DNA of 64,000 bases. It comes from Piromyces finnis finn (Eukaryota; Fungi; Neocallimastigomycota). The stretch covers positions 248,001 to 312,000 of the forward strand of contig MCFH01000052.1 of NCBI GenBank assembly GCA_002104945.1, read 5' to 3'. Below are positions 11,767 to 64,000 of the stretch, one piece after another. The position numbers and the translations under genes were made by a program. Each line of letters begins with the position of its first letter. Position 1 is the stretch's first letter. Below the pieces are notes generated by a model that ran no database searches, was not told the origin of the DNA, and saw nothing but the letters and a program-made list of their open reading frames with translations.

Positions 11767-12786
11767 TATTAAGTTTTGGGGTTTGGTTATGTGGCCAGGT
11801 CAGAATGTTTTAATTATATAGTAAAAAATGTTTTTTTAAGAAATTAAATTTAAATATAAAATAACACTTTAAACTTCCAAATGAAAAATTAATATTTATT
11901 TTTTTAAAATAGCTTTTTATAAAATTTTATTTATTTAGTAATAATAATATAAATGATAATATATTTAATAACTATATAATTAAGATTATAACTATAATCT
12001 TTACAAAGGATTAAAATCGAATTCAATTCATTCTCTTTTATATTTTTTGTTCAGATTATTAAATTGATAAAAATAAAGTATTACATGTAATATATTAATA
12101 ATATAATTAAATAAGTAATAAGATTGTTTGTTTGTTTGTTTGTATGTTTGTTTGTCATGACATAAAAATAAAATAAACATAAATCATTTAAACCCTTGAT
12201 CCGTTAACCTATTTTATAATAATTAGAATTATTTAATTTATAGATGTTAACTGTTACACCTAAATGGTTTAGTTCTATTTTTAGTAATAGTCATTATCAT
12301 TAATTAAATTAATATAATTAAAATTTCTATTGATAAATTCTTAATTTTTGTAAAGTCATAAGAAATATTTATGATCCATACTTGATATTCTATTGATTTT
12401 AATATACCAATTAAAATCTTTGAATGATCATAACTTCTTTAAATGACCAGTTAGAAGGACCGCGATTGTACCAAAATATAGCTTTTCCTTTAAGCTTTCT
12501 AATAAACTTGGTTTCACAGCCAACGCTACGGCCGTAGTACATACAGCCGTAGCGTTCGTTTTTGGCGAGTTATGCCTTGTTTCATGTTTGTTTATTTTTG
12601 GCTAATGGTTAAAGTGTATTGATATTAAATTTTTGAAATCATAACCCTTTCACTGAATCAAAATTTAAAAGGTGACTTTTAAAGGTGTTTTAAAATAATT
12701 ATTGAAATTATTTAATTATAATTATTATGTTTAATTAATTATAGATATTATCTGAATTTGTTTTAAATCCAGTTAATATCTTCACA
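11767..12786 (-). repeat. Gypsy-2 3' LTR (family A)
   Basis: Plus strand reads TATTAAG (TG mutated to TA)...ATCTTCACA; PPT at 12787-12800. Confidence 0.9.
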
Positions 12787-13166
12787 ACGCCCTCCCTAGG
12801 AATTCGTATTCCAGACGAATTCTAGAAACTGGAGCGAGAAATAAAAATTTTTGATTTTAAAAAATTTTTACGAGAGGAAGTAATAATTTCAAAAGGTCAC
12901 TTGGTCATTGTGAGATTTTTTGAAATTTCACTTTTTGAAAAATTTTCTTGTTGATAAAATTTTAATAATAAAAATGATAATAGAAATAAAAAATAATTAA
13001 GTTTTAATATAATAATTGAAAAATATTAAGTGTAAAAATTTTGAAATTTCAACATTTCAAAATTTTGTGATGAGTTAAATTTCGAAATTTAGTTGTTATA
13101 AAAATCTTTTGTAAATGGCGTAAAAATTATTTTTTGAGAATCATTGACTTATTAATGTTGATTTAA

Positions 13167-16100: not shown

Positions 16101-17974
16101 TCAATAGTATGTTCTTCTAAATTGCTTACTTCTTCTGGTTTTTCGGACAAAAAAGTATGAATTAAATAATTATAATTATATCTATCATAATTATTTTTAT
16201 TTAATATAACTTTTTTAGAAAATTTGGAACGTTTAGATTTGAATTTGTGGAATCGACCATTTTTCTTCTTCTTAAAGGTTTTGGATCTGAAATAAAAATT
16301 ATGAATTTTATTTTTTAAATTATAAAAAGTAGCGGAATATTTTTTATTATTATTTACACCTGTAGAAGTGGTAGGTGTAGTATTCTTATCATTTCTATTA
16401 TGAGAAATAAATTTTTCTAAATTTAAAAACTTAGTAGTATGCTTCATATTGAATTTCTTTTTGTTAAAATCATTTTAAATTTGAATATAAATATTTTTAT
16501 TATAATTATAATGAATTTCATATTTGGACATGAATATATTTCCAAATAATAAATCTGTCGGAATATAATCCGCTAGTAAAAATTTTTCTTTGAAATGATG
16601 AAATGAAATTTATTGTTGATAAATAGTTTTAACTGGAAGTTTAGGTTGATATATTCATCAAGTTCAATTGAAGTACCACTGATACCTTGTACAGTGATAA
16701 CATTATTCATTTTATGAGAATGTAATTGTAATGTACGTAATAGTTTGTACGACATAAAATTACAATAAGATCCACTATCTAATAGTGATGTACATATAGT
16801 TTTATTATGTATTTTATTTGTACCTCCATTATTGGATAATATATATGTATTAAAAGTAAAAAATGTTGGAGGTAATGTATTATCTTTATTGATAATGGGA
16901 AAAGTGTAGTTTAATATTTTTATATTCGAGTGGTGATGGGACTTCAATGGAAGTCCTTTATTTAGTTTTTTGAACTAATTTTTTGAGCCTTATAATTGTT
17001 GTTATAGTAATTATTATTATGTTTTTGGAAGTTATTGTTATTGTTGTTATTGTATGGTCTGTGGTGGTTGAAATGTGAATTTCTTTTCTTGTTAGACTTG
17101 GAACTAGAAAACTGGTTAATCTTATTCTTTGTAGAAAGAGAACTTTCAATCAAAATACATCTAGTTATAATGGACTCCATAGTGGTTGGAAATACCTCCA
17201 TCTTTTCAATTTCTTCTGATATTTTGGATGTAACCCATTGTAAAAGATTAAAGATAATGCTTCTTCATTCCATTTAAATTGTTGTGAAAGAGAGCAGAAT
17301 TCTTCGATATAATCATTAATTTTACCATATTGTTGTTTTAAACACATTATTTTGATTTTAGCTATCTTGTAACTAACAGTATTGGAGAAAGCAATTCTTA
17401 ATCCATCCAATAATTCTTGCATGGTAGCTGGATAAATATTATCCATGTACTTGGCAAGATACCAATTTCTAGCAGCATCACGAAGACGGAATTGTACAAA
17501 ATTAATTTTTGTTTCTTCTGGTAAAGTTCGATTTGGTAGAGTTTTAAAAGTATCTTCACATAATTGACAAAATAGATCGGTATCACTAGTCTTACCGGAA
17601 AACATACCTGGATCTGGGACTTGAGTAATTGGAGTAGCAAAACGACCTCTCATGATAACATCATGATCTAAATCAAATCTTGAAGTAGATTCATCATCTC
17701 TAAAGGCATTAGGTCTTGGAGTAGCTATCCTATCATAATTGTTATGTAACAATGGTTGTTCATCTTCATTCCGAGTAGCTTGACTATTATTCATACTGGT
17801 TAATACTCCCATGATTTCATTTAAACGATTATTCACATCATTGGAAAAATTTTGAAAATCTTCACGGAAAACCAAATTTTCATTGATACCCTCAATGATA
17901 TCTTTGGCAGTCTGAGTAGCATCCTCTCTAAGTTGGTTTACCTCGTCTGGGAAGTTAGGAACTGGAGTAAACAT
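13167..17974 (-). pseudogene. gag-pol: Gypsy-2 gag-pol, disrupted
   Basis: Gag MFTPVPNF...RLRDAARNWY with no CCHC seen, LLDSGS protease, RT (SPAGYPVVFQKKKDG; YLDD), RNase H, integrase (EIDFI, TDRG, VERSN, GPY) and a divergent chromo-like tail. Confidence 0.92.
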
Positions 17975-17998
17975 TTTAAAGTAGCCACTAAACTGCGG

Positions 17999-18009
17999 GT
18001 AAAGATTAT
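17999..18009 (-). promoter_or_regulatory. Gypsy-2 primer-binding site ATAATCTTTAC (self-priming type)
   Basis: Abuts the 5' LTR. Perfectly complementary to GTAAAGATTAT inside LTR-A (11994-12004, minus). Confidence 0.75.
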
Positions 18010-18999
18010 TGTTAAGTTTGGGTTTGGTTATGTGGCCAGATCAGAATATTATTAATTATATAGTAAATATGTTTTTTAAGAAATTAAATTTAAATATAAA
18101 ATAACACTTTAAACTTCCAAATGAAAAATTAATATTTATTTTTTAGAATAACTTTTTTTTAAAATTTTATTTATTTAGTAATAATAATATAAATGATAAT
18201 ATATTTAATAACTATATAATTAAGATTATAACTATAATCTTTATAAAGAATTAAAATCGAATTCAATTCATTCTCTTTTATATTCTTTGTTCAGATTATT
18301 AAATTGATAAAAATAAAGTATTACATGTAATATATTAATAATATAATAAGATTGTTTGTTTGTTTGTTTATTTGTCATGACATAGAAATAAAATAAACAT
18401 ATGATTAATCATTTAAACACTTGATCCGTTAACCTATTTTATAATAATTAAAATTATTTAATTTATAGATGTTAACTGTTACACCTAAATGGTTTAGTTC
18501 TATTTTTAGTAATAGTCATTATCATTAATTAAATTAATATAATTAAAATTTCTATTGATATATTTTTAATTTTCGTCAAGTCATAAGAAATGTCTATGAT
18601 CCATACTTGATATCCTATTGATTTTAATATACCAATTAAAATCTTTAAATGACCATATCTTCCTTAAATGACCAGTTAGAAGGACCGCGATTGTACCAAA
18701 ATATAGCTTTTCCTTTAAGCTTTCTAATAAACTTGGTTTCACAGCCGTAGTACTTACAGCCGTAACGATCGTTTTTAGCGAGTTATGCCTAGTTTCGTGT
18801 TTGTTTATTTTTGGTTAAGGGTTAAAGTGTATTGATATTAAATTTTTGAAATCATAACCCTTTCACTGAATCAAAATTTAAAAGGTGACTTTTAAAGGTG
18901 TTTTAAAATAATTATTGAAATTATTTAACTATAATTTTTATGTTTAATTAATTATAGATATTATCTGAATTTGTTTTAAATCTAGTTAATATCTTCACA
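18010..18999 (-). repeat. Gypsy-2 5' LTR (family A)
   Basis: TGTTAAG...CTTCACA on plus, followed by TCGTG. Confidence 0.9.
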
Positions 19000-21040: not shown

Positions 21041-21122
21041 GTCAGTTTGTCCGAGTGGTTAAGGAGTCAGACTTGAAATCTGATGGGCTTTGCCCGCGCA
21101 GGTTCAAACCCTGCAGCTGACG
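21041..21122 (+). tRNA. tRNA-Ser(TGA): tRNA-Ser, anticodon TGA, intronless, long variable arm
   Basis: Acceptor GTCAGTT/AGCTGAC+G, anticodon arm TCAGA-CTTGAAA-TCTGA, T-loop GGTTCAAACC, downstream T6 terminator. Confidence 0.96.
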
Positions 21123-23319: not shown

Positions 23320-23873
23320 TAATAAAAAATTAAATTTATAAATTAAATATTATTATAATAACATTATTTTAAACACAGATTAATATAAATTAAATTAGTA
23401 CTAAAATATTTATATAAATTATTAATTTTAAAATTATAAATGTAAACAAGAAATTACTTATTTATTTATTTGCTTATTAATTAAATAGTTAATTATTGTT
23501 TATTAATATAATACTTTAAAAATAATATAAATGTATAAATAGTGTTAGAATTACTTTATTTTAAAAATTGTTCCTAAAAATACTGTAAAATTAGATATTT
23601 ATATAATTTATATAAAATAATATTTGTAATTATAATAATATACATACGAGATGTATTGAATAATAATAACATATATATATTTAATAATACAAGAGTTATT
23701 AAATATTAAAACTTTATAATTAAATAAAATAATTTTATATTTTAAACTAACAAAGACAAATGAACAAGTATAAAAATCATTTATTTTTATTTTCTTATTT
23801 TTATTTTTTAGATACAAATATTATCACTTTCTATAGTAAAATATAGAATTAAGATAATATTTTCCTTGTATCA
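23320..23873 (+). mobile_element. Solo LTR-G (empty TCACT site at 23824-23828)
   Basis: Collinear with 60869-61445. Start TA (from TG), end GTATCA, 4-bp TSD TTGT. Confidence 0.75.
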
Positions 23874-40094: not shown

Positions 40095-43000
40095 ATGGAT
40101 GAAGAATTGATGAACCATGCTACGTTGAAGGATGGTTTCGCTGGAAATCGTCGTTTCTTTAAGGGTTTTCTCGCCAAAATAGAATTAATCTTTATGGTCT
40201 ACCCAGAGCGCTACGCGGATGACGAAGCAAAAATCGTCTATATTATTTCAAGACTATATGGTGAAGCCTTGAATTGGGCTGCATCATTAATTCACAACCA
40301 TGACGAATGCCTATTAAATTATGACTCATTTGTTGCAAAGCTTAAATCTGTGTTTGGCAACAACGACTCAACATTTGTGGCTAATCAAAAGCTTCGAACT
40401 ATAAAGCAAAGGAAAATCGGAGAAATTCAAAAATATATTCTTGAATTTAACCGATACTCTGATGACTCCTCTTGGAACGAAAGTGCAAAAATGGACGCCT
40501 TCTTAGCTGGACTACAAGATCAAGTCGCCAATAGAATTTTAGAAATGTTTCCCGGTCCACAAACGCTACTAAATTTACAAGTTATAGCATCAAGAATCGA
40601 TTCTAGAATCGATACTAATAGAAGATTTTTCAACAACAATCACTCTAATAGCACCAATCAAAACCGAAGAACTGAAGCAAATAGAAAACCTTTCACTTCG
40701 AGAAATAAGAAAACTTACGGACCGCTTACCTCAGAAGAAAAGGCTAGAAGAATTAAGGAGAATCTCTGTTTATATTGTGGTTCTCCAGATCACAAGTTAA
40801 ACAACTGTCCAAAAAGAAGTAAAAATGAAAAAACAGCTGGGACTCATATTTCTAATTCTATGCCTGAAAAGAAACCTAGAATAAGATTCTCCGATAATCC
40901 CCATTTGAAACAACCAGTTTTTGAGTTCCAACTCAATACTTCCGACGTCTCCGTTAACACTAAACTACTAATTGATTCAGGATCCCAACTTAACCTAATA
41001 GATGTGGTCTTTGCAGAAGAAAACAACATTCCTTTTGATAAATCCGTCTCTCTCGACAAAATCTCTGGTATTGGTGGGGAACAACAAGTCTTAGGTAAAT
41101 CCATCCCAATTTCAATTAAATACAAAAACCACCAATGTAAAACTATATTTTATATTGTAGACCTCCCGGGATATTGTGGTATCTTAGGTGCTGAATGGTT
41201 ACATCAGCACAACCCTATTATTAACTTCGTTGAAAAAGAATTATCTTTTAATTCAAATTTCTGTTTGTCACATTGCTCTGTCATTCCAAATGTTGCCCCT
41301 ACTTATGTTATTTCTTCTATTTCTAATGATTCCAAACCTTCTTGTAGCACTTCAACCAATTCTTATATCCATGATTCTGTAACAAATCTTCCAAAAAGTC
41401 AAGATTCCACCACTAACACTTCTAGTAATCAAGAAGTTATTCTACCCGCTGAACTTCAAGCCTTTGAAGATGTATTTAATGAAAAAGCCGCTGAACAATT
41501 GCCGCCACATAGGCAATACGATTGTGAAATCCGTCTTAAGCCGGACTCCAAACTTTTCTATGGACCAATTTATCCTTTAACGGATAAAGAATCAATGGTA
41601 TTGAAGGAATACATTGATGAAAATTTGCGAAAAGGTTTCATCAGACCTTCGAAGTCTCCGGCTGGTGCCCCAGTGCTTTTTGTCCCGAAGAAAAATGGTG
41701 AACTACGTCTATGTCAAGATTATAGGAAATTAAACGAAATCACAATCCGTGATTCATACCCTTTACCATTAATTAATGACATGTTGGAACATCTAGGTAA
41801 AAGCAACATCTTCTCCAAACTTGATTTAAGATCCGCTTATAATCTTGTGAGGATCAAAGAAGGTGATGAATTCAAAACTGCTTTTACTTGCAAATATGGA
41901 CACTTTGAATATACTGTAATGCCGTTTGGTTTGAAAAACGCACCTGCAGTATTTCAACATTTCATTAATGATGTGCTTGAGGGAATCTTGGGAATATTTG
42001 TCTTTAGTTATATTGATGACTTAATAATTTTCTCGGAAAATTTTAAAACCCATGTAATCCAGGTTAAAGAAGTACTTAAAAGACTTAGAAAAGCGGGACT
42101 TTACGCAAAACTTGAAAAATGTGAGTTCTTTGTCCCATTTATCGATTTCTTAGGTCATCGTATATCTTCTGAAGGTATTTTAATGGATCCAAAGAAAATT
42201 GCATCTATCTTGGAATGGCCAACTCCTAAAAGCGTTAAAGAGGTTCAAGCGTTTCTTGGGTTAGCTAATTATTATAGAAGATTCATTGCCGGTTTTGCTG
42301 AGATCGCACAACCACTGAATGCGTTACTTAAGAAGGATGTTAAATTCTGCTTCTCTCATCAGTGTGAAAATTCTTTTAGTTTAATCAAATCCAAATTTGC
42401 TTCTTCCCCTGTTCTTGCATACCCGAATCGTGATATACCTTTCATAGTTGAAACGGATGCAAGTAATTTCGCTATAGGAGCAATCCTTTCACAAACGAAT
42501 CCAAAAGACAAGTCGGTTCATCCAGTGGCATTTTTCTCTAGATCGCTTAGTTCTTCTGAAAGGAACTATCCGATCTACGATAAAGAACTTTTAGCAATTG
42601 TAGCTGCTTTAGAAACTTGGCGACATCTACTCAAAGGAACTACTCAGCCTTTCAAGATTTTCTCGGATCATAGAAATTTGCTCTACCAGAAGAAACCCGA
42701 AAAAATGACTCAAAGATTAGTTCGTTGGTCTCTGTTCCTTGCCGAGTTTAACTTTATCATCGTTTATCGGTCGGGTTCTGCTAATGGTAAACCTGACGCT
42801 TTATCTAGAAGACCAGATTACTTAAAAAATTTTAAGTATAACAATGACATTCCAAATTCCGTCCTTAGACCCGAAAACTTTTGTGCCATGGTTCTGGATA
42901 ACAATCCCCTTATGGATAAAATCATTTCAAATAGCAAAGATGATAAATTTTACTTTGAAGTATGCAAATATTTAGAAACTCAAATTCCCCCAGTCCCTCA

Positions 43001-44324
43001 TTCGCAAATCGAAAACTTTAAAATTCAAGATGGTGTATTATTATTCAATAATAGGATCTATGTCCCCCAAGATTGTCGTTTGGAAGTTCTTAAAATTTGC
43101 CATGACTCACCCTCCGCTGGACACTTCGGATTAAAGAAAACTACTTCCCTTATTGTTCGTGACTTTTGGTGGCCTTATCTCGATGTCAAAGAATATGTTA
43201 GATCTTGCGAAATATGTTGCCGATCAAAGGATTCTCGACACAAACCCTATGGATTTCTCTCCCCTTTGGAAATTGCTGAACGTCCTTGGTCTTCCTTATC
43301 TATGGACTTTATTACGGATCTCCCACCTTCCCAAAAGTATACTTGCATTCTTGTAGTCACCGATAGATTAACTAAATTATGCCACTTCATTCCTTTTGAG
43401 AACATCCCTTCTGCCTCCGATACTGCTGATGCTTTCATGATCAACGTTTTTCGTCTCCATGGATTACCAAATGAAATTCTTTCGGATAGAGGTACTCAAT
43501 TTACCTCTAAATTCTGGAATTCAATTTGCAAATCTTTTGATATAAACCTAAAATTTTCTTCTTCCTACCATCACCAAACAAACGGGCTGACGGAGAGGGT
43601 AAACTCCGTTGTAGAACAATACCTAAGGTGTTACTCAAATTATAAAGGCTCTAACTGGTACAAGTTCTTACATCTTACTGAATTTAGTTACAATAATGCC
43701 GTTCAAGAATCTACCAAAACTTCACCATTTTTTGCTAACTATGGCTATAATCCAAAACATTCTCCAATTTTACCAAGTCGTACCGAGATACCAACTGCGG
43801 ATGAATTCACAAGAAATTTCAAAGAAATAATTAAAACTCTTAAAGATAACTTGAAGAAATCCATTAATCAACAAGAAAAATTCGCAAACAAACACAGAAG
43901 TAAAGCCCCTGAACTCAAGGTAAATGATAAAGTATGGATCAACAGTTCTTTAATAATGCGTAATGGTAATAAGAAGTTAAAACCTAGAAAACTTGGTCCG
44001 TACAAAATAATTGAAAAAATTTCTCCAGTTTCTTTCAAATTGGAGTTACCAAAAGAAATTCGCATTCATCCAGTCATCCACGTTTCAGAATTGGAACCCT
44101 ACCATGAAGACAAGTTCAATAGAAAGCAACCGCCACCTCCGCCGGTTATTGTGGATAATAAGGAAGAATTTGAAGTCGAAGAGATATTGGATAAAAGAAG
44201 ATATTATGGTAAAGTCCAATATCTAATTAAATGGAAAGGATACCCAATATCTGAAGCATCTTGGGAGCCAGAAACAAATTTGAATTGTCCAGAACTACTT
44301 AAGGAATTCAACAAAAAGAAATGA
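40095..44324 (+). CDS. gag-pol: Gypsy-3 Gag-Pol polyprotein with C-terminal chromodomain (1409 aa)
   Basis: Single ORF: [24 protein letters not shown], RNase H, HDSPSAGH...CEIC, MDF/SDRG/TER integrase triad, [13 protein letters not shown]...YLIKWKGY...SWEPE. Confidence 0.98.
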
Positions 44325-49456: not shown

Positions 49457-49922
49457 TCGTGTGTTAAATTTTGGGATTTGGTTATGCGGCCAGGTCAGAA
49501 TGTTATTAATTATATAGTAAATATGTTTTTTAAGAAATTAAATTTAAATATAAAATAACACTTTAAACTTCCAAATGAAAAATTAATATTTATTTTTTAG
49601 AATAACCTTTTATAAAATTTTATTTATTTAGTAATAATAATAATAATAATATTGTGAACATTTATGGACACATAATTTTATTTATCTATATCATATATTT
49701 ATTACACACGTGACTATTTTATAAAAACATAAACATGTATTAAAAGTGTTGTAAACGTAATGTCTACGTGTTGTAGAGAAAGTTATTTTTTATTTATTTT
49801 ATTTTATTTTTTATGGTCACATGACCTTACATCTCATTATATAACTGTAATATTTACAATGTAACTTTTTCTCTTTGTTAACCTTATTAATAAAATTATT
49901 TATTAATTAAATTTATTTCACA

Positions 49923-49937
49923 GATTAAGAGTCTCAA
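49923..49937 (+). promoter_or_regulatory. Copia-1 PBS GATTAAGAGTCTCAA
   Basis: Abuts the 5' LTR; reverse complement TGAGACTCTTAATC matches the tRNA-Lys(CUU) anticodon stem-loop. Confidence 0.75.
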
Positions 49938-50006
49938 ACTCTAATCAATAATAAAAATTTCTTAAGAAAAATTTAAAACAAAATTTTGTGTATTAAAAAT
50001 TTTAAT

Positions 50007-53000
50007 ATGTCCCAACAATTCATTTTAGCCAATGACCAACGTCTTCATGGAAAGTCCAACTTTGATACTTGGAGTCTTTTAATCAAGGCAGCCGCCACTA
50101 GACAGGGTCTAACTAGCTACCTTGAACAAGACATAGTTGGAACCATTAAAGACAACAACTTTGAGATAAACCTTAATCTCAAAGATGAATATAATATGGC
50201 TATTATGAGGATTATTGCTGAAGCCGCGGACTACCGTCCTAACAGCAATCTTGCGTCTGTTTATAAAACCCTCATTAAGACTACGGGGGAGGACGCCAAT
50301 ACAAGCAGCAACATTAATAACAATGTTGTAGCCGCCAATAAATTGGCAAACTTGTCAATTTATAAGGCCGAGATTATATCAGCGGCTGAAAAGCTAAATG
50401 CTGATACTTACCTTATGATCATTCAAAATGTGGATGAGAAGATCCTCAGAGAGATTGGTCATAGTTCCAATAGTTACCAAGTATTCAAAAAGTTGAATAC
50501 AAAATACGGTAACGCCAATGCAGACATTGAATACTGGCTAAAGAAGTTAAGAAAATTACATACAGAAGATGTAAGCAAAGTCAGTAAAACAATCGATAAA
50601 ATCAAGGAAATCTTCCTTGAGATGTCTGAATTAAAAATGTCCTTAAGTGAAAGGGAAAAACTAAAATATATGTACAATTCCCTTCCAAGAAGTGTCAAGA
50701 ACCAAGTAAGTGTAACCTTAGATGAAACTTATGATCAGCTCTATGAGAAGGTCAAAAGTTATATCAACGCCAAATCCTACTTCGAAGATTGGACCAACAA
50801 CGACCAAGATGAAGATGACGAAGTTGATGATCCAATGGATGTTGATTTTGTTAGTAGAGAAAACAAATCAACAAAGAATAAAAGCTACGGTAATAGAAGA
50901 AATATAAACAGAAGTCACCGTACCTACTGCCATATCTGTTGTGAACATGGACACTCTACCGAAATGTGTGAATACAACCAAAAGGCCAAAATGGAAAGGG
51001 ACCAAAGAAAAAACAACAACAGGGCCTTTAACCAAAGTAAACAAAAGAGAAATTCACAACAAGGGAGGCAAGTTCACAAGAAAAAACAACAAAAGAAATT
51101 CGAACAAGAAGTAGATTTCGTCGAAGACTATGACGATAATGAAAATTATGGAATTAACGTAGAATTCGAAGATATCAGACCTCTGACAGAAAGAAATATC
51201 TACCTAATTGAAAAGGATGAAGTTACAGAGGAAGACACTCCTAACACAAAGGATATAGATTATGTGTATGGAGAAAATAAATACGACGAATGGTTCTATG
51301 ATACTGGTGCCGCCGAACATATCGTTAATAATAAGGACATTCTAGAGAACTTCACAGAAGAGCACATTCAACTTAGATGTGCAAATGGAACTACATGTGA
51401 ATTTAGTGGTTATGGTTCATATGAGTTTAAGGTAAAAGACAAAACTTACAAGTTAGAAAAAGTTTTGTACTCAGACAAAGTTAGCAAGAATTTAATTAGT
51501 GGTGTAGGACTTGCTAAAGTTGGTTTAAGAAGCATTATAGATATTACTGATGATGGAAAAGTCAGGCTTATTTTCAAGGACTCTGAAAATAAAAATATAA
51601 TGCAAACGTATTCAAATGAATTAAACCAATTTAAAATTAAGCTCATAAACATTGATAAAAAGATAAATGAACCATTTATTGCAAATTTTGAAGATGATTT
51701 AGGTATATGGCATAAGAGATTAGGCCATTTCTACCAGAAGGATCTGAAGAAATACCTAAAACAACATAAAATTAAAGTAACTCCTTGCCTAGACTGTAAA
51801 ATATCTAAAATGAAGAAGTCTCCACATAACAAAACTGTACCCAAAGCCGGAAGAGTTCTAGAGACTATTCACTCCGATATTTCAGGCCCGTTTAATTCAT
51901 CCGTCAATAATAAGAAGTATTTTATGACTATGCTGGATGAATACTCAAGAAAACTCTGGATTTATACTCTCAAGTCAAGGTCTGAGGCACCGGACATTAT
52001 TAATGAATTCCTAAAGAATGCCAATAATACTTTTGACAAATATAAAGTCAAAACATTCAAGACAGATGGTGCAAAAGAGTATAATAGTAGTAAAGTTATA
52101 AAATATTGTAAGGAAAACGGTATATCTAAGATAAATTCACCTCCTTACATACATGAATTAAATGGTAAAGCAGAAAGAATAAACCAAACAATTCAAAATT
52201 CTGCTAAAACGCTTTTATATTGGGCTAAATTATCTGAAGACTTTTGGAGTTTTGCTGTTAAATATTCTTGTTATATTTACAACAAAATACCACACCAAGG
52301 AAACGATAACTTAATTCCTGATGAAGTGTTTACGAACGAGGAAGCCGATCTAAAATACCTAAAGGTATTTGGATGCATATGCTACTTTAAGGACTATTCT
52401 CTTAAAAAGTCAAAATTCGCGCCTAACTCGAAGGAAGGAATATTTCTTGGGCTCAGTGAAGCACATCACTCATATATCGTCATGGAGATATGTGGTGATA
52501 AACTTAAAATCCACTATTCTAGGGAAATAGAATGCTGTGAAGATAAGCCGGCACATTATAATTATAAAAATAAAAATATAAACGATCCGTATTTCTCTTT
52601 CAATGATTCATATAATATCAATAATTACGACAGAAAGGACCCCTCAGAATCATCAAAGAACAACAACAATACGGATACAAATTCAATCATAAATAAAGAA
52701 AATAATAACACAGAAAGGACTACTTCCAAGAAAATGGTGAATATCCACTCCAAATATAAAGACGAAGAGATAACTACCAAAGAAAAAGAAGAAACTAATA
52801 TAAGGACTAATATTAATTCCAAAATTGAAGAAAATTCAAAAAACAATTTAAACAGTAATTTAAAAAGCGACACTCAAACCAATAACAAAAATAATAATTC
52901 AAATTCGAAATTTAATAAAAATAAATTTACAAATGACATTTTAAAAGTTTTAGAAGAAATTGCAAATGACAATTGCAATTTCGAAAAGAAAAATTGCAAA

Positions 53001-55166
53001 ATTTCTAATAATATTGACGAAAATAATAAATACCAATATCCTGTAACTCCTGGTCCTGATTACGTTTGTTATGGTAATACTCTTGCCGACAAAAACAAAA
53101 ATGAAATCATTAAAAATCCTGAATATTATAAAAATTCTCCTACTGAATATTCTACCACCGAAAATATTTCCTATACCAAAAATACTGGTGAAAATACTAC
53201 TGAATATCCTAATACTGATCATAGTGAAAAAAATTTTATTAATAAAAATTTTTCAAAAATTCAAATTAAAAATGAAGACATTCTATTGGATGATAAACCA
53301 AATAATCCACGTCATAATTCTAGCAAAAATTCTAACGTTACACAGGATAATTCTACCTACTCTGATAATATTCACATTGATGATACTAAAAATTTAAATT
53401 CAAAAATTTCTGATTCTCCTGATATGACACGTGATTCCCATTCTTATATTTCAGATGACAATAAATCTATGGATGATCCTGATCCAAACTTGGAAGATGA
53501 AAATGATATCATGGATGATATCATGGCCGATAAATCTGATGATTCCTACCATCCTGAAAGAAAAAGGCCTTGCAGTCCTACCTCTCTGAATAATTCCAGT
53601 ACTCCTAAGAAGCACAAAAACAAATTTATAGCTACCGTTTTTACTGATGCTCCCACTACGTACAAAGAAGCTATGTCTTGTACGAATTCTAAATATTGGA
53701 AAGCAGCCATTCAAGATGAATTAAATAATTTATATTCTAACAAAATTATGTCCCTGGTTAAAAATATCCCAAAAAACAAGAATATTATATCTACCAAATG
53801 GGTTTTTGCTGTTAAAAGGGACAGCAATAATAATATTGTACGTTTTAAAGCTAGACTTGTCGCTAGAGGTTTCCGTCAAAAACAAGGTATTGATTTTGAC
53901 TTAACCTATTCCCCTACATTAAATATTGACAGCCTAAAATTTATTATTGCTATTGCTGCAAAATTTAAGTGGGATATATATCAGCTTGATATAAAAGCTG
54001 CCTACCTCAATGCTCCATTGGATACAGATATTTATACCACAATTCCGCTTGGAGATAGCACCTTTGGGGGAGGATACTGGAAGCTGAATAAAGCTCTCTA
54101 TGGTTTAAAACAATCAGGAAGACAATGGAATAAAACAATAGATAAATTCCTGAAAAATAATAACTTTAAACCATTAAAATCCGAACCATGTATTTATACG
54201 TTAAAAGAAAATAAATACGTAAAATGTATAATTGGTCTATATGTAGACGACATGGTTATAATTGGAAAAACAAATACAATAGAGAGAGTAATAAGCAAAA
54301 TTAAAAGTAGATTTAAAATATCAAATAGCGGCCCTATTAGTTACATTCTAGGAATAAAGATTGAAAAGAAAGGATCCAAATACATTATTTCCCAAGAGAA
54401 TTACATTAATAATGTATTACAAAGATTTCATATGGAAAACGTACGTAGAAGAAATACGCCATGTACAACAACCGACAAGAACACCTCAAATAATAACCAA
54501 TTTGATAAAACAAAATATAAAAGTGCAATAGGTGCATTAATATATCTGTCAAAATGTACAAGACCGGATATAGCGTTTGCAGTAAACAAAGCTGCAAGAA
54601 AATCTGAAAATCCAACAGTATCTGACTGGAATACAATTGTAAATATTTTCAGATACATATCTACTACCAAACATTACAAAATCGAATACAGTGGAGAAGG
54701 AAAAATACAAGGATACACTGATTCGGACTACGGAGGCGCAGAAGACTTTAAATCTACCTCTGGAGGGATAATCCTAATGGGAAATAGCCCAATATGCTGG
54801 TTATCCAAGAAACAAACTTGTGTGGCAACATCTACCGCTGAGGCTGAGTACATTAGTACGTCCATGAATACGAAGAAAATCTTATGGATCAAAAACATGG
54901 TGGACGAAATTTTTAATTACAACAAAAATATAACTTTATTCACCGACAACAAAGCAAGCAAGAAAATAATAGAAAACGGTGAAATAAACACAAAGTTAAA
55001 ACACATAAATATACACTACCACTTCATTATTGACAACATAGAAAAGAACAATATAAAAATCGAATATGTAAATACTAAAGAAATGTTAGCTGACCCTCTA
55101 ACTAAAGATCTACCTGGTCCAAGAATGTTTGATTATACAAATAAGATATTCTTAAAGAAAATCTAA
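50007..55166 (+). CDS. gag-pol: Copia-1 Gag-Pol polyprotein (first ATG at 50007; track ORF starts at TTG 49986)
   Basis: CHICCEHGHSTEMC, YDTGAA, WHKRLGH, HSDISG/TDGAKEY/AER integrase, KARLVARGF, YVDD, TDSDY...AEAEY...ADPLTK. Confidence 0.98.
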   Translation: MSQQFILANDQRLHGKSNFDTWSLLIKAAATRQGLTSYLEQDIVGTIKDNNFEINLNLKDEYNMAIMRIIAEAADYRPNSNLASVYKTLIKTTGEDANTSSNINNNVVAANKLANLSIYKAEIISAAEKLNADTYLMIIQNVDEKILREIGHSSNSYQVFKKLNTKYGNANADIEYWLKKLRKLHTEDVSKVSKTIDKIKEIFLEMSELKMSLSEREKLKYMYNSLPRSVKNQVSVTLDETYDQLYEKVKSYINAKSYFEDWTNNDQDEDDEVDDPMDVDFVSRENKSTKNKSYGNRRNINRSHRTYCHICCEHGHSTEMCEYNQKAKMERDQRKNNNRAFNQSKQKRNSQQGRQVHKKKQQKKFEQEVDFVEDYDDNENYGINVEFEDIRPLTERNIYLIEKDEVTEEDTPNTKDIDYVYGENKYDEWFYDTGAAEHIVNNKDILENFTEEHIQLRCANGTTCEFSGYGSYEFKVKDKTYKLEKVLYSDKVSKNLISGVGLAKVGLRSIIDITDDGKVRLIFKDSENKNIMQTYSNELNQFKIKLINIDKKINEPFIANFEDDLGIWHKRLGHFYQKDLKKYLKQHKIKVTPCLDCKISKMKKSPHNKTVPKAGRVLETIHSDISGPFNSSVNNKKYFMTMLDEYSRKLWIYTLKSRSEAPDIINEFLKNANNTFDKYKVKTFKTDGAKEYNSSKVIKYCKENGISKINSPPYIHELNGKAERINQTIQNSAKTLLYWAKLSEDFWSFAVKYSCYIYNKIPHQGNDNLIPDEVFTNEEADLKYLKVFGCICYFKDYSLKKSKFAPNSKEGIFLGLSEAHHSYIVMEICGDKLKIHYSREIECCEDKPAHYNYKNKNINDPYFSFNDSYNINNYDRKDPSESSKNNNNTDTNSIINKENNNTERTTSKKMVNIHSKYKDEEITTKEKEETNIRTNINSKIEENSKNNLNSNLKSDTQTNNKNNNSNSKFNKNKFTNDILKVLEEIANDNCNFEKKNCKISNNIDENNKYQYPVTPGPDYVCYGNTLADKNKNEIIKNPEYYKNSPTEYSTTENISYTKNTGENTTEYPNTDHSEKNFINKNFSKIQIKNEDILLDDKPNNPRHNSSKNSNVTQDNSTYSDNIHIDDTKNLNSKISDSPDMTRDSHSYISDDNKSMDDPDPNLEDENDIMDDIMADKSDDSYHPERKRPCSPTSLNNSSTPKKHKNKFIATVFTDAPTTYKEAMSCTNSKYWKAAIQDELNNLYSNKIMSLVKNIPKNKNIISTKWVFAVKRDSNNNIVRFKARLVARGFRQKQGIDFDLTYSPTLNIDSLKFIIAIAAKFKWDIYQLDIKAAYLNAPLDTDIYTTIPLGDSTFGGGYWKLNKALYGLKQSGRQWNKTIDKFLKNNNFKPLKSEPCIYTLKENKYVKCIIGLYVDDMVIIGKTNTIERVISKIKSRFKISNSGPISYILGIKIEKKGSKYIISQENYINNVLQRFHMENVRRRNTPCTTTDKNTSNNNQFDKTKYKSAIGALIYLSKCTRPDIAFAVNKAARKSENPTVSDWNTIVNIFRYISTTKHYKIEYSGEGKIQGYTDSDYGGAEDFKSTSGGIILMGNSPICWLSKKQTCVATSTAEAEYISTSMNTKKILWIKNMVDEIFNYNKNITLFTDNKASKKIIENGEINTKLKHINIHYHFIIDNIEKNNIKIEYVNTKEMLADPLTKDLPGPRMFDYTNKIFLKKI

Positions 55167-56361
55167 TTTGAGGGGGAGTGTGAACATTTATGGACACATA
55201 ATTTTATTTATCTATATCATATATTTATTACACACGTGACTATTTTATAAAAACATAAACATGTATTAAAAGTGTTGTAAACGTAATGTCTACGTGTTGT
55301 AGAGAAAGTTATTTTTTATTTATTTTATTTTATTTTTATGGTCACATGACCTTACATCTCATTATATAACTGTAATATTTACAATGTAACTTTTTCTCTT
55401 TGTTAACCTTATTAATAAAATTATTTATTAATTAAATTTATTTCACAAATATAAATGATAATATATTTAATAACTATATAATTAAGATTATAACTATAAT
55501 CTTTACAAAGGATTAAAATCGAATTCAATTCATTCTCTTCTATATTTTTTGTTCAGATTATTAAATTGATAAAAATAAAGTATTACATGTAATATATTAA
55601 TAATATAATTAAATAAGTAATAAGATTGTTTGTTTGTTTGTTTGTTTTGTCATGACATAAAATAAAATAAACATATGATTAATCATTTAAACACTTAATC
55701 CATTAACCTATTTTATAATAATTAAAATTATTTAATTTATAAATGTTAACTGTTACACCTAAATGGTTTAGTTCTATTTTTAGTAACAGTCACTATCATT
55801 AATTAAATTAATATAATTAAAATTTCTATTGATATCTTTTTAATTTTCGTCAAGTCATAAGAAATGTCTATGATCCATACTTGATATCATATTAATTTTA
55901 ATTTACTTATTAAAATCTTCAAATGACCATATCTTTCTTAAATGACCAGTTAGAAGGACCGCGATTATACCAAAATATAGCTTTTTCCTTAAGCTTTCTA
56001 ATAAACCCGGTTTCACAGCCGTAGTACTTATAGCCGTAGCGTTCGTTTTTGGCGAGTTATGCCTTGTTTCGTGTTTGTTTATTTTTGGTTAAGGGTTATA
56101 GTGTATTGATATTAAATTTTTGAAATCATAACCCTTTCACTGAATCAAAATTTAAAAGGTGACTTTTAAAGATGTTTTAAAATAATCATTGAAATTATTT
56201 AATTATAATTATTATGTTTAATTAATTATAGATATTATCTGAATTTGTTTTAAATCCAGTTAATATCTTCACATCGTGTTTATTCAGTTAGTTTTTATTA
56301 TGTTTTTATGTGAGTAGTGTTTCAAATAATGATAAATAATTAAATTTATAAATTATGAATT

Positions 56362-56407
<46 letters not shown>

Positions 56408-56878
56408 TTAAAACATAGATAGTTAAAAATTAAAATAATTAATATGTATAAAATTATTAAATTAAAAACTATAAATGTAAACTTTTTGTCTATTTAATTG
56501 TTTATTTATTTTTAAATTAAATAGTTTATATTTGTTTATAATTATACTTTAAAATAATAATTTTGTATAAATAGTAATAGAAAATGTTCTTTTTAAAAGA
56601 TGTTCCTATGTTCCTAATAATCCAGTAAAATTAGATAATAATATTAAATTTTATTAAAATAATAGTTGTGATTATATTTACATACATTCAAGATGTATTA
56701 AACCATATATTTAATAATACAAGAGTTATTAAATATTAAAACTTTATAATTAAATAAAATAATTTTATATTTTAAACTAACAAAGACTTGCAAATGAACA
56801 AGTATAAAAATCATTTATTCTATTTTTATTTTCTTATTTATTTTTATTTATTAAATTTTAGATACAAATATTATCACT

Positions 56879-58027
56879 TGTAAAAGTTTTACTAAACTTA
56901 TAATTTAATATTAAAATATTAAATTAAATAAAAGGTTAAAAGATAACTAGGTTAGAAAAAAAAATGTTTTATTAAAATAATCTTAATTGATTTATAAATG
57001 AATAATTAAATTATATATTATGGTTAAAATAATTTCTTTTATTTTATTTAATGATATATTGCTAAAATATATAATAATAAGATTATTTAGTAGTAATACT
57101 CATTAAGTATTAATTATTATTAATAGTTAATAATTTCTAGTTAATAATCTATAGCTAATAATTCATAGTTAATAATTTATAGTTAATAATTTATAGTTAA
57201 TAATTTATAGTTAATAATTTTTGGTTAATAATCTTTACAAAGATTTTAATTTCATAACTATTCTAAACTATTTATACTATTTGTAATTTTACATTTAATA
57301 ATAAAATAACTTTTCAATACATGATTATATTCATAATATATTTTATAATACTTAAACTAAACTTAAGACTTATTCCTAATTATTAAAAAATAACTATTGT
57401 TTATAATATTCATAATATTAATTATTTCTTAATTATGATATAATTCATTGAATATAATATTAATAATTATAATCCTCTAGTTCAAAGATTATAAATTATG
57501 TTATTGAAATAATTATTATAAAATAAAGTTAATTAGTTCCGGAAAATAATTTTAATTTAATTAAACAATAATTTTTATACTTTGAGTGAATGATTTATGT
57601 TTGATATATCAGGGGTGATCATTCTCTGAATAAACAATTAATCATTGCTAACAAAATATCTTTAAATTGGAATATCTCGTGAACCAGCAGAGATATTGAC
57701 CTGATTTTAAGATATGTTGTTTGTCTCGAGCGTGGCTTTCTAACGAATGTAATTATAACCAAAATATTTTTATTCAAAAATCGTCATTCGTTGAGGAGAT
57801 ACGCGTGTTTTTCCTTATTCCATTTTAACGATAAGGGTTAAAGTTATTTATTATAAAAATTATTAAGGGTTAAGGTCATATTTTAACCTTTTCTAAATTT
57901 TTAAATATTTCTTAATAAAATTTTATAATTTATTTGAAAATAAAATATTTGTTGATTTTGAAATTTCATAAGTGATTTCACAATTCCAAGTGATCTTGAA
58001 ATTGTATTTTCACTAGTATTCGTGACA
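56879..58027 (-). mobile_element. Solo LTR-B (1149 bp)
   Basis: TG...CA, flanked by TCACT/TCACT. Confidence 0.92.
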
Positions 58028-58032
58028 TCACT

Positions 58033-59164
58033 TGTTAAGTTTTTGGGTTTGGTTATGCGGCCAGGTCAGAATGTTATTAATTATATAGTAAAAATGTTTT
58101 TTAAGAAATTAAATTTAATTATAAAATAACACCTTAAACTCCCAAATGAAAAATGAAAAATTTATATTTACTTTAAAATAACTTTTTATAAATTTTTTAT
58201 TTATTTAATAATAATAATATAAATGATATTATAAGTAACTATATAATTAAGATTATAACTATAATCTTTACAAAGAATTAAAATCGAATTCAATTCATTC
58301 TCTTTTATATTCTTTGTTCAGATTATTAAATTGATATTAATAAGAATAAAGTATTACATGTAATATATTAGTAATATAATTAAATAAGTAATAAGATTGT
58401 TTGTTTGTTTGTTTGTTTGTCATGACATAAAATAAAATAAACATATGATTAATCATTTAAACAGTTGATCCTAATTAGTAATTATAAAAACTATTCAATT
58501 AATAATTCATCATTATTAATTGATATTACCATAACATATTTGTTATAATTAAATAATTATTATTTTCAAAATTATTTCTAATAAAACTTGCCGTTAACCT
58601 ATTTTATAATAATTAAGATTATTTAATTTATAGGTGTTAACTGTTACACCTAAATGGGTCTAGTTCTATTTTTAGTAACAATCGTTATCATTAATTAAAT
58701 TAATATAACTAAAATTCCTATTGATATATTTTTAATTTCATCAAGTCATAAGAAATATTTATGATCCATACTTGATATCATATTGATTTTAATTTACCTA
58801 ATAAAATCTTTAAATGATCATAACTTCCTTAAATGATCAGTTAGAAGGACCGCGATTGTACCAAATTGTAGCTTTCTTCCTAAGCTTTCCAATAAACCTA
58901 GTTTCATCACCGTAGCACTTACAGCCGTAGCGATCGTTTTTGGCGAGTTACACCTTATTTCGTACTTGCTTATTTTTGGTTAAGGGTTATAGTGTATTGA
59001 TATTAAATTTTTGAAATCATAACCCTTTCACTGAATCAAAATTTAAAAGGTGACTTTTAAAAGTGTTTTAAAATAATTATTGAAATTATTTAATTATAAT
59101 TATTATGTTTAATTAATTATAGATATTATCTGAATTTGTTTTAAATCCAGTTAATATCTTCACA
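58033..59164 (-). mobile_element. Solo LTR-A (1132 bp, with ~120-bp internal insert)
   Basis: TG...CA, flanked by TCACT/TCACT. Confidence 0.92.
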
Positions 59165-59169
59165 TCACT

Positions 59170-60315
59170 TGTCACGAATACTAGTGAAATTACAATTTCA
59201 AGATCACTTGGAATTGTGAAATCACTTATGAAAATTCAAAATCAACAAATATTTTATTTTCAAATAAATTATAAAATTTTATTAAGAAATATTTAAAAAT
59301 TTAGGAAAGGTTAAAATATGACCTTAACCCTTAATAATTTTTATAATAAATAACTTTAACCCTTATCGTTAAAATGGAATAAGGAAAAACACGCGTATCT
59401 CCTCAACGAATGACGATTTTTGAATAAAAATATTTTGGTTATAATTACATTCGTTAGAAAGCCACGCTCGAGACAAACAACATATCTTAAAATCAGGTCA
59501 ATATCTCTGCTGGTTCACGAGATATTCCAATTTAAAGATATTTTGTTAGCAATGATTAATTGTTTATTCAGAGAATGATCACCCCTGATATATCAAACAT
59601 AAATCATTCACTCAAAGTATAAAAATTATTGTTTAATTAAATCAAAATTATTTTCCGGAACTAATTAACTTTATTTTATAATAATTATTTCAATAACATA
59701 ATTTATAATCTTTGAACTAGAGGATTATAATTATTAATATTATATTCAATGAATTATATTATAATTAAGAAATAATTAATATTATGAATATTATAAACAA
59801 TAGTTATTTTTTAATAATTAGGAATAAGTCTTAAGTTTAGTTTAAGTATTATAAAATATATTATGAATATAATCATGTATTGAAAAGTTATTTTATTATT
59901 AAATGTAAAATTACAAATAGTATAAATAGTTTAGAATAGTTATGAAATTAAAATCTTTGTAAAGATTATTAACCAAAAATTATTAACTATAAATTATTAA
60001 CTATAAATTATTAACTATAAATTATTAACTATGAATTATTAGCTATAGATTATTAACTAGAAATTATTAACTATTAATAATAATTAATACTTAATGAGTA
60101 TTACTACTAAATAATCTTATTATTATATTTTAGTAATATATTATTAAATAAAATAAAAGAAATTATTTTAACCATAATATATAATTTAATTATTCATTTA
60201 TAAATCAATTAAGATTATTTTAATAAAACATTTTTTTTCTAACCTAGTTATCTTTTAACCTTTTATTTAATTTGATATTTTAATATTAAATTATAAGTTT
60301 AGTAAAACTTTTACA
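59170..60315 (+). mobile_element. Solo LTR-B (1146 bp), opposite orientation
   Basis: Near-perfect reverse complement of 56879-58027; flanked by TCACT/TCACT. Confidence 0.92.
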
Positions 60316-60372
60316 TCACTTTCTATATTCCTTTATAGAATTAAGATAATATCCTCTTCGTATCAATAAATT

Positions 60373-60867
60373 TGTAAAAGGTTTTTATATATATTAGTTA
60401 ATAGGTTAAGTATAACAAGTTAATTAAGTTAGTTATTACCTCTCTATACGAGTTAATAACTAAATAAAGTTTTATAAAAAATAATAAAAGAACTAAAATA
60501 AATATTATAACACAAAAATAAATATAAAACAAATAAATATTAATATGAAATATTATTTACTTAAATAATTATTATAATTATTATCTTTTATTTATTAGTT
60601 ATAATTATATACATTAATTATTATTATAGCTATTAATTTACTTTAATACTAACGCTAAAGTATTTAACGTTAGTTTTAACTATACTATTTAACTATATTA
60701 GTTTATTTTCTTTACCACTTGATTGGGTAAAGCAAATAAACTTCCTATTTAATTAATAACCATTAATATATGGTTATACATATATCTGGCCAATAAATGG
60801 TGACCAGAATATATGGTTTCAATTGAAATATTTGTGGGCAAACTTATGGCCACAAATATTTCTTACA
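60373..60867. mobile_element. Solo LTR-E (495 bp; empty AATTG site)
   Basis: TGTAAAAGG...TTCTTACA; homologous to 4114-5147. Confidence 0.75.
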
Positions 60868-61447
60868 ATGATAAATAATTAAATTTATAAATTATGAATT
60901 TATAATAATAATAATAATAATAATAATATTAAAACACAGATAGTTGAAAATTAAAATAATTAACATGTATAAAATTATTAAATTAAAAACTATAAATGTA
61001 AACTTTTTGTCTATTTAATTGTTTATTTAGTTTTAAATTAAATAGTTTATATTTGTTTATAATTATACTTTAAAATAATAATTTTGTATAAATAGTGATA
61101 GAATTATTTTATTTTAAAAGATGTTCCTAATAATCCAGTAAAATTAGATAATAATATTAAATTTTATTAAAATAATAGTTGTGATTATATTTACATACAT
61201 TCAAGATGTATTAAACCATAACATATATATATTTAATAATACAAGAGTTATTAAATATTAAAACTTTATAATTAAATAAAATAATTTTATATTTTAAACT
61301 AACAAAGACTTGCAAATGAACAAGTATAAAAATCATTCATTCTATTTTTATTTTCTTATTTATTTTTATTTATTAAATTTTAGATACAAATATTATCACT
61401 TTCTATATTCATTTATAGAATTAAGATAATATTTTCTACGTATCAAA

Positions 61448-61458: not shown

Positions 61459-62775
61459 CCAAAAATCTACTGAGTAGCTAGTCTTAAGGCCGGAGGGAAT
61501 TACGTGAACCTCTCTGTTCCCCATAGAAAACTACTACTACTGCATCAGTTTTAACAAAATTTAATTAATTTCAGAATTAATTAAAAATCGGAATTAACAA
61601 TACTTCAACAATATATATTAATATATTCCAATATATTATTAATATATATAAAAAAAAAATTTCACAAATATTTAATTCCAATAATTAAATAAATAACATT
61701 AATATCAAAATTTTAAATATTCAAATTATTTAAAATAAAATTAGTATTATAATACAAAAACATTATAATATAATTCAATTATAAATCCATAATCAATTAT
61801 AATATATACCAATTATATATTATAAAATAATAAAATTATAATGTATATTTCACTCATATAGAAAAACATTATATTCCAACTGCCCTGCTCTTCTGAAAGC
61901 CTTTAAAAATTTCAAAATAATCTGTGGATAATGGAATAAAAGTATCAGAAAATAAACTTTAAATAATAATAAACCTTAAGTAAGCTTTAATTAATGTGGA
62001 TATAAATGAAGAATAAAATTATTTGAAAAAGACACTGCAGCTACTATTAAAAACTATCCGGAAAATTATATATTAAAAATAAATTAATGGAGGACAATAA
62101 AAATTAAACATGCATATAAAGAAAGAAAAAAGAAAATCCTAAGAAGAAGAAGAAGTAATAAAATGAAGAACTTTAATTACTTATAAAATTTAATTCTTTA
62201 TCTATTATTTTTCCTTTCGTAACTTCAAGGGACGAAGTTATATCTTAAGGGCGAAGATATTGATAAATAATTAAATTTATAAATTATAAATTAATAATAA
62301 TAATAATAATAATTAAAATATAGATAAAAATTTAAAATATTTAACATGTATAAAATTATTAAATTAAAAATTATAAATGTAAACTTTTTGTTTATTTAAT
62401 TGTTTATTTCTTTTTAAATTAAATAGTTTATATTTGTTTATAATTATATCTTAAAATAATAATTTTGTATAAATAGTGATAGAATTACTTATTTTTAAAA
62501 AAATGTTCCTAATAATCCAGAAAAATTAGATAATAATATTAAATTTATTAAAATAATACTTATAATTATATTCACATACATACCGAGATGTATTCATAAT
62601 AAAATATATATTTAATAATACTAGAGTTATTAAATATCAAAATTTATAATTAAATAAACTATATTTTATAAAACTAACTAATACTTGAAAATGAACAAGT
62701 ATAAAAATCATTTATTTTTATTTTCTTTAAATTTTATTTATTAAATATTATTTTTTAGATACAAATATTATCACT

Positions 62776-64000
62776 TGTAAAAGTTTTACTAAACTTATAA
62801 TTTAATATTAAAATATCAAATTAAATAAAAGGTTAAAAGATAACTAGGTTAGAAAAAAAAAATGTTTTATTAAAATAATCTTAATTGATTTATAAATGAA
62901 TAATTAAATTATATATTATGGTTAAAATAATTTCTTTTATTTTATTTAATGATATATTGCTAAAATATATAATAATAAGATTATTTAGTAGTAATACTCA
63001 TTAAGTATTAATTATTATTAATAGTTAATAATCTATAGTTAATAATCTTTAGTTAATAATTTATAGTTAATAATTTTTGGTTAATAATTTATAGTTAATA
63101 ATTTATAGTTAATAATTTAATAATTTATGGTTAATAATTTTTGGTTAATAATTTATAGTTAATAATTTATAGTTAATAATTTAATAATTTATGGTTAATA
63201 ATTTTTGGTTAATAATTTATAGTTAATAATTTATAGTTAATAATTTAATAATTTATGGTTAATAATTTTTGGTTAATAATCTTTACAAAGATTTTAATTT
63301 CATAAACTATTCTAAACTATTTATACTATTTGTAATTTTACATTTAATAATAAAATAACTTTTCAATACATGATTATATTCATAATATATTTTATAATAC
63401 TTAAACTAAACTTAAGACTTATTCCTAATTATTAAAAAATAACTATTGTTTATATATTTATAATATTAATTATTTCTTAATTATAATATAATTCATTGAA
63501 TATAATATTAATAATTATAATCCTCTAGTTCAAAGATTATAAATTATGTTATTGAAATAATTATTATAAAATAAAGTTAATTAGTTCCGGAAAATAATTT
63601 TAATTTAATTAAACAATAATTTTTATACTTTGAGTGAATGATTTATGTTTGATATATCAGGGGTGATCATTCTCTGAATAAACAATTAATCATTGCTAAC
63701 AAAATATCTTTAAATTGGAATATCTCGTGAACCAGCAGAGATATTGACCTGATTTTAAGATATGTTGTTTGTCTCGAGCGTGGCTTTCTAACGAACGTAA
63801 TTATAACCAAAATATTTTTATTCAAAAATCGTCATTCGTTGAGGAGATACGCGTGTTTTTCCTTATTCCATTTTAACGATAAGGGTTAAAGTTATTTATT
63901 ATAAAAATTACTAAGGGTTAAGGTCATATTTTAACCTTTCCTAAATTTTTAAATATTTCTTAATAAAATTTTATAATTTATTTGAAAATAAAATATTTGT
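62776..64000 (-). mobile_element. LTR-B running off the window end
   Basis: Starts TGTAAAAGTTTTAC after TCACT (62771-62775); near-identical to 56879-58027. Confidence 0.9.
63021..63285. repeat. 14-bp minisatellite with 64-bp higher-order unit in LTR-B
   Basis: GTTAATAATTTATA units; TTTTTGG recurs every 64 bp; shorter arrays in the other LTR-B copies. Confidence 0.85.

Follow-up and report, generated by a model that had tools for sequence, protein, structure and literature searches.

Three solo long terminal repeats stacked on one 5-bp target point to position-specific integration in Piromyces finnis

Introduction

By directing their integration to particular targets, retrotransposons can survive in compact genomes without being lethal to the host. 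Known tethers include TFIIIB for Ty3, RNA polymerase III (Pol III) for Ty1, Sir4 for Ty5 and Sap1 for Tf1, and to our knowledge only a few integration tethers are understood. Ty3 of Saccharomyces cerevisiae targets Pol III start sites, inserting within a few bases of them in either orientation. Here we describe a nest of long terminal repeat (LTR) retrotransposons in a 64,000-nucleotide stretch of the fungus Piromyces finnis (contig MCFH01000052.1, positions 248,001 to 312,000; hereafter the window). Three solo LTRs of two Ty3/gypsy families, named A and B, are stacked there inside the LTR of another element, named G, and are separated by the same five bases, TCACT.

Several described systems resemble parts of this arrangement. 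Tf1 integration directed by Sap1 shows single-nucleotide hot spots and depends on the orientation of the bound site (PMC5371812), and the LTRs of Tf1 carry the binding site themselves, so that insertions cluster at LTRs (PMC5371812, citing Hickey 2015). In a 'double insertion', as described by McGurk and Barbash (2018), the target duplication is kept in the junction of two insertions; the examples are R1, P-element dimers and an inverted pair of Rover LTRs with an ATATAT junction (PMC5932611). Nested LTR retrotransposons of plants favour particular regions of the resident elements (Jedlicka et al. 2019); the preference is weak and regional in scale, and LTRs seldom receive insertions (PMC6911290).

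Genome-wide counts given below refer to the P. finnis genome of 56,455,805 bases in 232 contigs, figures that match a published PacBio/Falcon assembly of 56.46 Mb and 232 contigs (PMC5622200). The genome is very AT-rich. C-numbers denote its contigs and L-numbers denote loci extracted from it.

Results

We found the order TCACT-B(-)-TCACT-A(-)-TCACT-B(+)-TCACT (Table 1), with all three LTRs nested within a G LTR of about 577 bp that belongs to a non-autonomous element. Direct reading bears out to the base the triple stack, the families and the orientations proposed in the sequence-only reading. The sense strand of A is the minus strand of the window (open reading frames, ORFs, at 13419-17974), and that of B, taken from the full-length copy L053, is the orientation of 59170-60315. 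Each unit has TG..CA termini, 5-bp duplications and homology to the LTRs of gag-pol elements, as a solo LTR should. Since other A and B copies in the genome bear different target duplications (CTATT, TCGTG, TTATT, ATGAC and more), TCACT belongs to neither LTR. The four identical 5-mers coincide exactly with the six LTR termini and are the only host DNA between the LTRs, which excludes chance. Excising the 3442-bp block regenerates ATTATCACTTTCTATA. The same sequence stands intact at 23820-23835 and 61392-61407, with its empty TCACT at 23824 and 61396, and the proposal that removal restores an uninterrupted site is correct.

Table 1. Coordinates of the TCACT stack, the G copies around it and other occupied G pads. 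Positions without a contig are those of the window.
Feature	Position	Strand	Details
TCACT, target duplication copy 1	56874-56878		Read in the sequence
Solo LTR of Ty3/gypsy family B	56879-58027	(-) antisense	1149 bp, TG..CA ends, TGTAAAAG...CGTGACA
TCACT, copy 2	58028-58032		Read in the sequence
Solo LTR of Ty3/gypsy family A, young 1132-bp subfamily (A-young)	58033-59164	(-) antisense	TGTTAAG...CTTCACA
TCACT, copy 3	59165-59169		Read in the sequence
Solo LTR of family B	59170-60315	(+) sense	1146 bp, TGTCACG...CTTTTACA, TTTTACA end
TCACT, copy 4	60316-60320		Read in the sequence
G copy 1, left part, up to target	56330-56873	(+)	TGATAAAT...ATATTA; BLAST match to empty G copy positions 1-534
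G copy 1, right 45 bp	60321-60365	(+)	Ends ...CGTATCA; aligns with G positions 528-579
G copy 2, intact	60869-61445	(+)	Empty TCACT at 61396-61400
G copy 3, left part	62261-62775	(+)	Ends with TCACT at 62771-62775
Solo B LTR in the pad of G copy 3	62776-64000	(-)	Extends 75 bases past the window
Empty target in diverged G copy (23322-23873)	23824-23828	(+)	
Solo A-young LTR	C190:109.5 kb		TCACT/TCACT
Solo B LTR	C190:103.7 kb	(+)	TCACT; G copy only 76% identical
Solo A-old LTR	C8/C128		TCACT
Solo A-old LTR	C181:34 kb		TCACT
640-bp LTR 'H'	C159:506 kb		TCACT
A, then 1.9-kb LTR-like 'X' (double)	C159:236 kb		TATCA for A
A-young recombinants	C165, C176		One G flank only retained
Offset insertion, A	C46		TATCA
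Offset insertion, B	C79	(-)	TATCA
Offset insertions	C8/C128, C56		ATCAC
Offset insertion	C141		CACTT
Second triple on the same pad	C228 and duplicate C214		A-old element, AT-CACTT, B(-), CACTT, A-young, CACTT, right G

The two B LTRs of the stack form a 99.0% identical inverted pair and differ by 8 substitutions and 3 indel columns. We aligned 39 B LTRs and found both alleles at all 11 differing columns in other genomic B copies. B(+) is separated by only 3 substitutions from its nearest relative, a copy on contig C79, as against 8 from B(-). Because B(+) is nearer to the C79 copy and the differing alleles are all common to other copies, neither arm was copied from the other. The A LTR is one substitution away from at least six other genomic copies. 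With TCACT at all four boundaries and different family polymorphisms in the B arms, the sequences support three independent integrations into one 5-bp target. The three separate integrations claimed earlier are upheld, A and B being different families and the B arms carrying separate sets of shared alleles. Private substitutions are absent from all three LTRs (for B(-), among the 39 copies), so the order of insertion in the stack is not datable. A composite transposon with long inverted ends was also considered and rejected: the whole genome holds a single instance of the junction in which TCACT joins the A end to the B(+) start, so the block is not a mobile composite.

The B LTR contains a 14-bp tandem repeat (TTAATAATTTATAG-like) of variable copy number, seen at 57113-57287, 59961-60105 and 63011-63349, and most length differences between B LTRs are due to it.

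The G LTR reads TGATAAAT...CGTATCA. Its insertion site, which we call the pad, lies 45 bp before the 3' end, directly to the left of the inverted repeat TTCTATA-N6-TATAGAA (in G copy 1, TTCTATA at 60321-27, a 6-base spacer and TATAGAA at 60334-40). Conservation of the pad among G copies is 0.96, which is high, yet not above that of other parts of G. Downstream of the intact G copy 2 we found a primer-binding-site (PBS)-like TGGTGGAGAATCC and then an 810-bp internal region without an ORF. The B(-) LTR in G copy 3 is closed by TCACT and the right part of G (C181:312062 ...GTGACA TCACT TTCTATA). All three copies lie inside 6 kb, and two of them are occupied. Each LTR of the stack could accordingly have entered a different G copy, the stack being assembled by unequal exchange or gene conversion through the 5-bp TCACT, and ectopic recombination among these LTRs does occur (L055/L056 on C176, described below). 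However, such an assembly would need two crossovers confined to 5 bp despite hundreds of homologous bases to the left and right, other stacks in the genome have a wide variety of 5-bp spacers, and a site-specific insertion into each G copy would still be required. We consider an origin by exchange highly improbable.

The pad is used recurrently. About 15 of some 250 G copies carry insertions within -2 to +1 bp of the site, by at least five LTR families and in both orientations. Left-flank copies number about 233, and an LTR start replaces TTCTATA in 8 of the first 100 listed. In loci that had not been picked for this site, the interrupted G copies were all broken at the pad position. A second triple occupies the pad on another contig (Table 1). 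In a comparison of the stack with the A-young copy on C190, identity is 92.6% for the left G flank (counting substitutions only) and 97.6% for 289 bp of the right G flank, as against 99.7% for the A LTRs. Because the G flanks have diverged more than the A LTRs, the insertions are independent of the history of the pads, and A is younger than the pad paralogy. The G pad is a genuine insertion hot spot. The stack had been put forward as direct evidence of site-specific targeting at one base. The targeting part of that claim stands, since the pad was reoccupied independently in other G copies; the single base does not, because the target duplications at the G pad (TATCA, ATCAC, TCACT and CACTT) span a 7-bp window and several pads are used.

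Two of the loci tabulated together, L040 (C8:31001-39500) and L041 (C128:1-8000), hold the same array in opposite orientation: an empty G, a G with a solo A and the neighbouring repeats. They are probably a single locus assembled twice or a very recent duplication.

Other pads came to light in the sequences flanking 37 B LTRs and 28 A-young LTRs. No target sequence is common to these flanks, yet sites recur. The TCGTG pad was taken by A twice in the window (18999 and 56273) and elsewhere by B (L014, L030) and by a triple of A-old, B(-) and A-young. Both A and B used each of the pads TAAAA, TATAT, ATTTT and TACAC/TATAC, and several B copies, full-length ones included, used AACCA. TCATT and GGTTA are homologous positions in diverged copies of one repeat, and TCATT was reused by one family. 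The inserts on shared pads have the same sense orientation in about 24 of 28 cases, B(+) of the stack being among the exceptions. Counted over the sampled loci, about three quarters of the A-young insertions sit in a recurrent pad or a stack.

Two further insertions in the window touch these pads. At 49462-56273, a complete Ty1/copia element (ORF 49986-55166; LTRs at about 49653-49811 and 55179-55337) interrupts an older A LTR whose duplication is TCGTG/TCGTG. A B(-) LTR with an internal deletion (538 bp) lies at 4114-5143, with a near-matching duplication, AATTG/AATTA; it is 7 bp from an AACCA pad, in a copy of the sequence upstream of G copy 2 (60373-60863).

We then searched the genome for stacked LTRs. 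The exact 14-mer of the A end occurs 225 times, and an LTR start (TGTNAHR) follows within 12 bp in 37 cases. The gap is exactly 5 bp in 21 of those 37, with many different 5-mers, where about one per gap length is expected; a control pattern gave 0. There is thus a genome-wide excess of 5-bp LTR-LTR junctions. One stack (C193:208304-216977; L058/L069) consists of an H LTR, GGTTA, a solo A, GGTTA, a full-length A and GGTTA. Because it ends in a full-length A whose own GGTTA matches the spacers, stacks grow by real integration. In two other triples, the member of the youngest-looking family adjoins the right-hand flank, a thin hint that the determinant lies on the right-hand side of the pad.

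The junctions might alternatively mean that resident LTR ends attract insertions, an integrase or factor at the LTR-host junction steering the next element onto the adjacent copy of the target irrespective of the host sequence. About one in ten A ends adjoins another LTR at exactly 5 bp, some B insertions lie in or overlap the first 3-5 bases of other LTRs (L024 with TGTGA, L031 with AATGT), and triples seem over-represented relative to pad occupancy. On the other hand, the first insertions into empty G copies hit these very bases, where no LTR end is near, several pads were taken singly by both families, and the newcomer stands at the U3 or the U5 end of the resident depending on the stack, with no constant relation. 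Attraction by LTR ends is therefore an unlikely explanation.

Recombination between these LTRs has left traces on C176. The A-young solo LTRs L055 (C176:254356-256087) and L056 (C176:226670-228401) lie on opposite strands 27 kb apart and have swapped flanks, one having the TAAAA pad on the left and the G pad on the right, the other the G pad on the left and the TAAAA pad on the right. They are the reciprocal products of a 27-kb inversion by LTR-LTR recombination, in which an A at the G pad recombined with an A at the TAAAA pad. On the G side the two flanks disagree (TATCA and CACTT), as would be left by a prior collapse of a same-family double, and the pair is consistent with the collapse of a same-family, same-orientation stack by recombination.

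Finally, we investigated families A and B. Both are Ty3/gypsy elements with gag, reverse transcriptase (RT), RNase H, H2C2, rve integrase and SH3 domains. Their integrases are 65% identical, and A and B are sister families. In both, ATAATCTTTAC directly follows the 5' LTR, and its 11-nt complement, GTAAAGATTAT, is found inside the LTR, so that at the sequence level the PBS is complementary to the element's own LTR transcript. A and B are thus predicted to be Tf1-like, putatively self-priming elements. A Pfam search revealed no Chromo domain at E up to 5. The last 50 or so residues of B Pol align with the chromodomain of a chromovirus at 40095-44324 in the window, which has an intact 1409-residue gag-pol ORF with a canonical C-terminal chromodomain and is 44% identical to B Pol.

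A full-length A lies at 11767-18999 in the window, and there are A pairs about 6.4 kb apart. The A subfamily of the stack has at least 40 copies that are 98-100% identical. Locus L053 (C187:214001-223200) holds a full-length B of about 8 kb with intact gag (303 residues) and pol (1201 residues) encoding RT, RNase H and integrase. Only 2 mismatches and a 27-bp indel separate the two LTRs of this element, the duplication (AACCA) is perfect, and the element looks recently active. Because of the near-identical A copies, together with the two mismatches and perfect duplication of L053, both families are young and probably active.

Discussion

We propose that A and B integrate at set pads in a position-specific, orientation-biased manner and reuse the duplicated target, and that LTR-LTR recombination follows; we put the probability of this at roughly three in four. 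The two families would not choose their sites by the 5 bp themselves. Instead, they would be placed to within about 2 bp, preferentially in one orientation, on a limited number of pads within other repeated elements. The cause may be a tether, or the integrase complex may recognise some feature of the DNA. Each integration would duplicate the 5-bp target, with one copy staying beside the unchanged flank, so that the pad can be hit again. Repeated integration would yield LTR-TCACT-LTR-TCACT-LTR. Recombination between the two LTRs of each full-length insertion would later have left a solo LTR, solo formation presumably having come after integration. The order B(-)/A/B(+) cannot collapse by recombination because no neighbours are direct repeats of one family, and this may explain why the stack survived.

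A narrower version of this proposal is that the targeting is tRNA-independent: Tf1-like elements would be tethered with about 2-bp precision and in a fixed orientation to a few pads, and occupied pads would stay active. The tether might be some host factor bound to the DNA, or else the complex that starts transcription at the resident LTR. We hold this version tentatively, as slightly less probable than its opposite.

Several observations weigh against the proposed mechanism. A k-mer search of eight pads in both orientations gave no convincing shared motif. Palindromes adjoining the target were found at 7 of 23 sites, compared with 24% of controls (p = 0.3), and are not enriched. No tRNA or other Rfam RNA was found near the pad. 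The spacer variant TTCCTT of TTCTATA-N6-TATAGAA is a minority form, present in about 15% of empty pads, but 4 of the 5 A-young insertions on the G pad are in G copies with this spacer; paralogy or gene conversion, instead of independent choice, could produce this skew. Either the variant or its subfamily is preferred, or those copies are paralogues in a favoured context. Multi-LTR stacks also seem commoner than the pad occupancy of 6-8% predicts, and an occupied pad may therefore attract more insertions than an empty one. The order of insertion in the TCACT stack is not established, and the idea of a determinant in the right flank draws on the two other stacks only. Lastly, none of the short contigs from the source sample spans the stack or can be assigned to the locus.

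This last search also bears on the assembly itself. A false join through a near-identical A or B repeat might have fused two simpler loci: no read spans the stack, A-young copies are 99.6-100% identical and hard to place, and C8/C128 resemble one locus assembled twice. However, the genome matches a PacBio/Falcon assembly in size and contig number (PMC5622200), and the reads of such an assembly are normally longer than 3.4 kb. Each arm has its own set of variants, and similar stacks occur on many contigs. Short contigs from the same sample do hold LTR-5bp-LTR junctions of other loci, for example an A end, GGTTA and an A start. Were a join false, one pad would still carry two double stacks. An artefact is very unlikely in our judgement, and we regard the finding as real and mechanistically suggestive.

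Returning to position-specific integration, we looked for the marks by which other elements find their sites. GGGTTA stands beside three pads; it was ruled out as a motif because these pads are homologous positions in related repeats. As for a Sap1-type mark, there is no motif common to the eight pads, and the G pad abuts TTCTATA-N6-TATAGAA. Pol III targeting of the Ty3 type, with a Pol III gene start within about 20 bp, is ruled out by the lack of a tRNA gene at the pad: ARAGORN and Rfam searches of the whole window found only a tRNA-Ser at 21041-21122, 35 kb from the pad.

Thus, in two very young, probably active families, the majority of the sampled copies occupy a handful of exact positions in other repeats, with an orientation bias and no tRNA gene. 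This pattern suggests that another tether exists, in a fungal phylum that has been little studied. Pads are short, defined stretches of sequence with hundreds of copies, so a direct search for the responsible factor could be made. In addition, the stacks illustrate how repeat-rich regions are shaped by repeated insertion at one site followed by recombination, and how this process can mislead automated repeat annotation.

Among known systems, Tf1 with Sap1 appears to be the closest analogue. Like Tf1, A and B are Ty3/gypsy elements with a self-priming arrangement, an 11-nt PBS complement being present in the LTR, and they use exact pads in other LTRs with an orientation bias. Unlike Tf1, they show no Sap1-like or shared motif at the eight pads, their pads lie in LTRs of other families and not in gene promoters, Pfam recognises no chromodomain in them, and their host belongs to an early-diverging fungal lineage. 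The review cited does not describe stacks, or the exact reuse of a duplicated target, for Tf1 (PMC5371812).

Like Ty3, A and B insert in both orientations and stray no more than a few bases from one position. However, no tRNA gene or tRNA-like RNA is found at or near the G pad, and the A and B pads are inside LTRs and other repeats. As in double insertions (PMC5932611), the target duplication is preserved in the junctions of the stacks, but the stacks here combine different families, have up to three members, are made up largely of solo LTRs and involve about one tenth of the ends of one family. In contrast to the nesting of plant elements, the preference is exact to about 2 bp and falls within an LTR. 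Targeted integration and double insertion are already known, and the stack is a variant of both, with a non-tRNA target and Tf1-like families.

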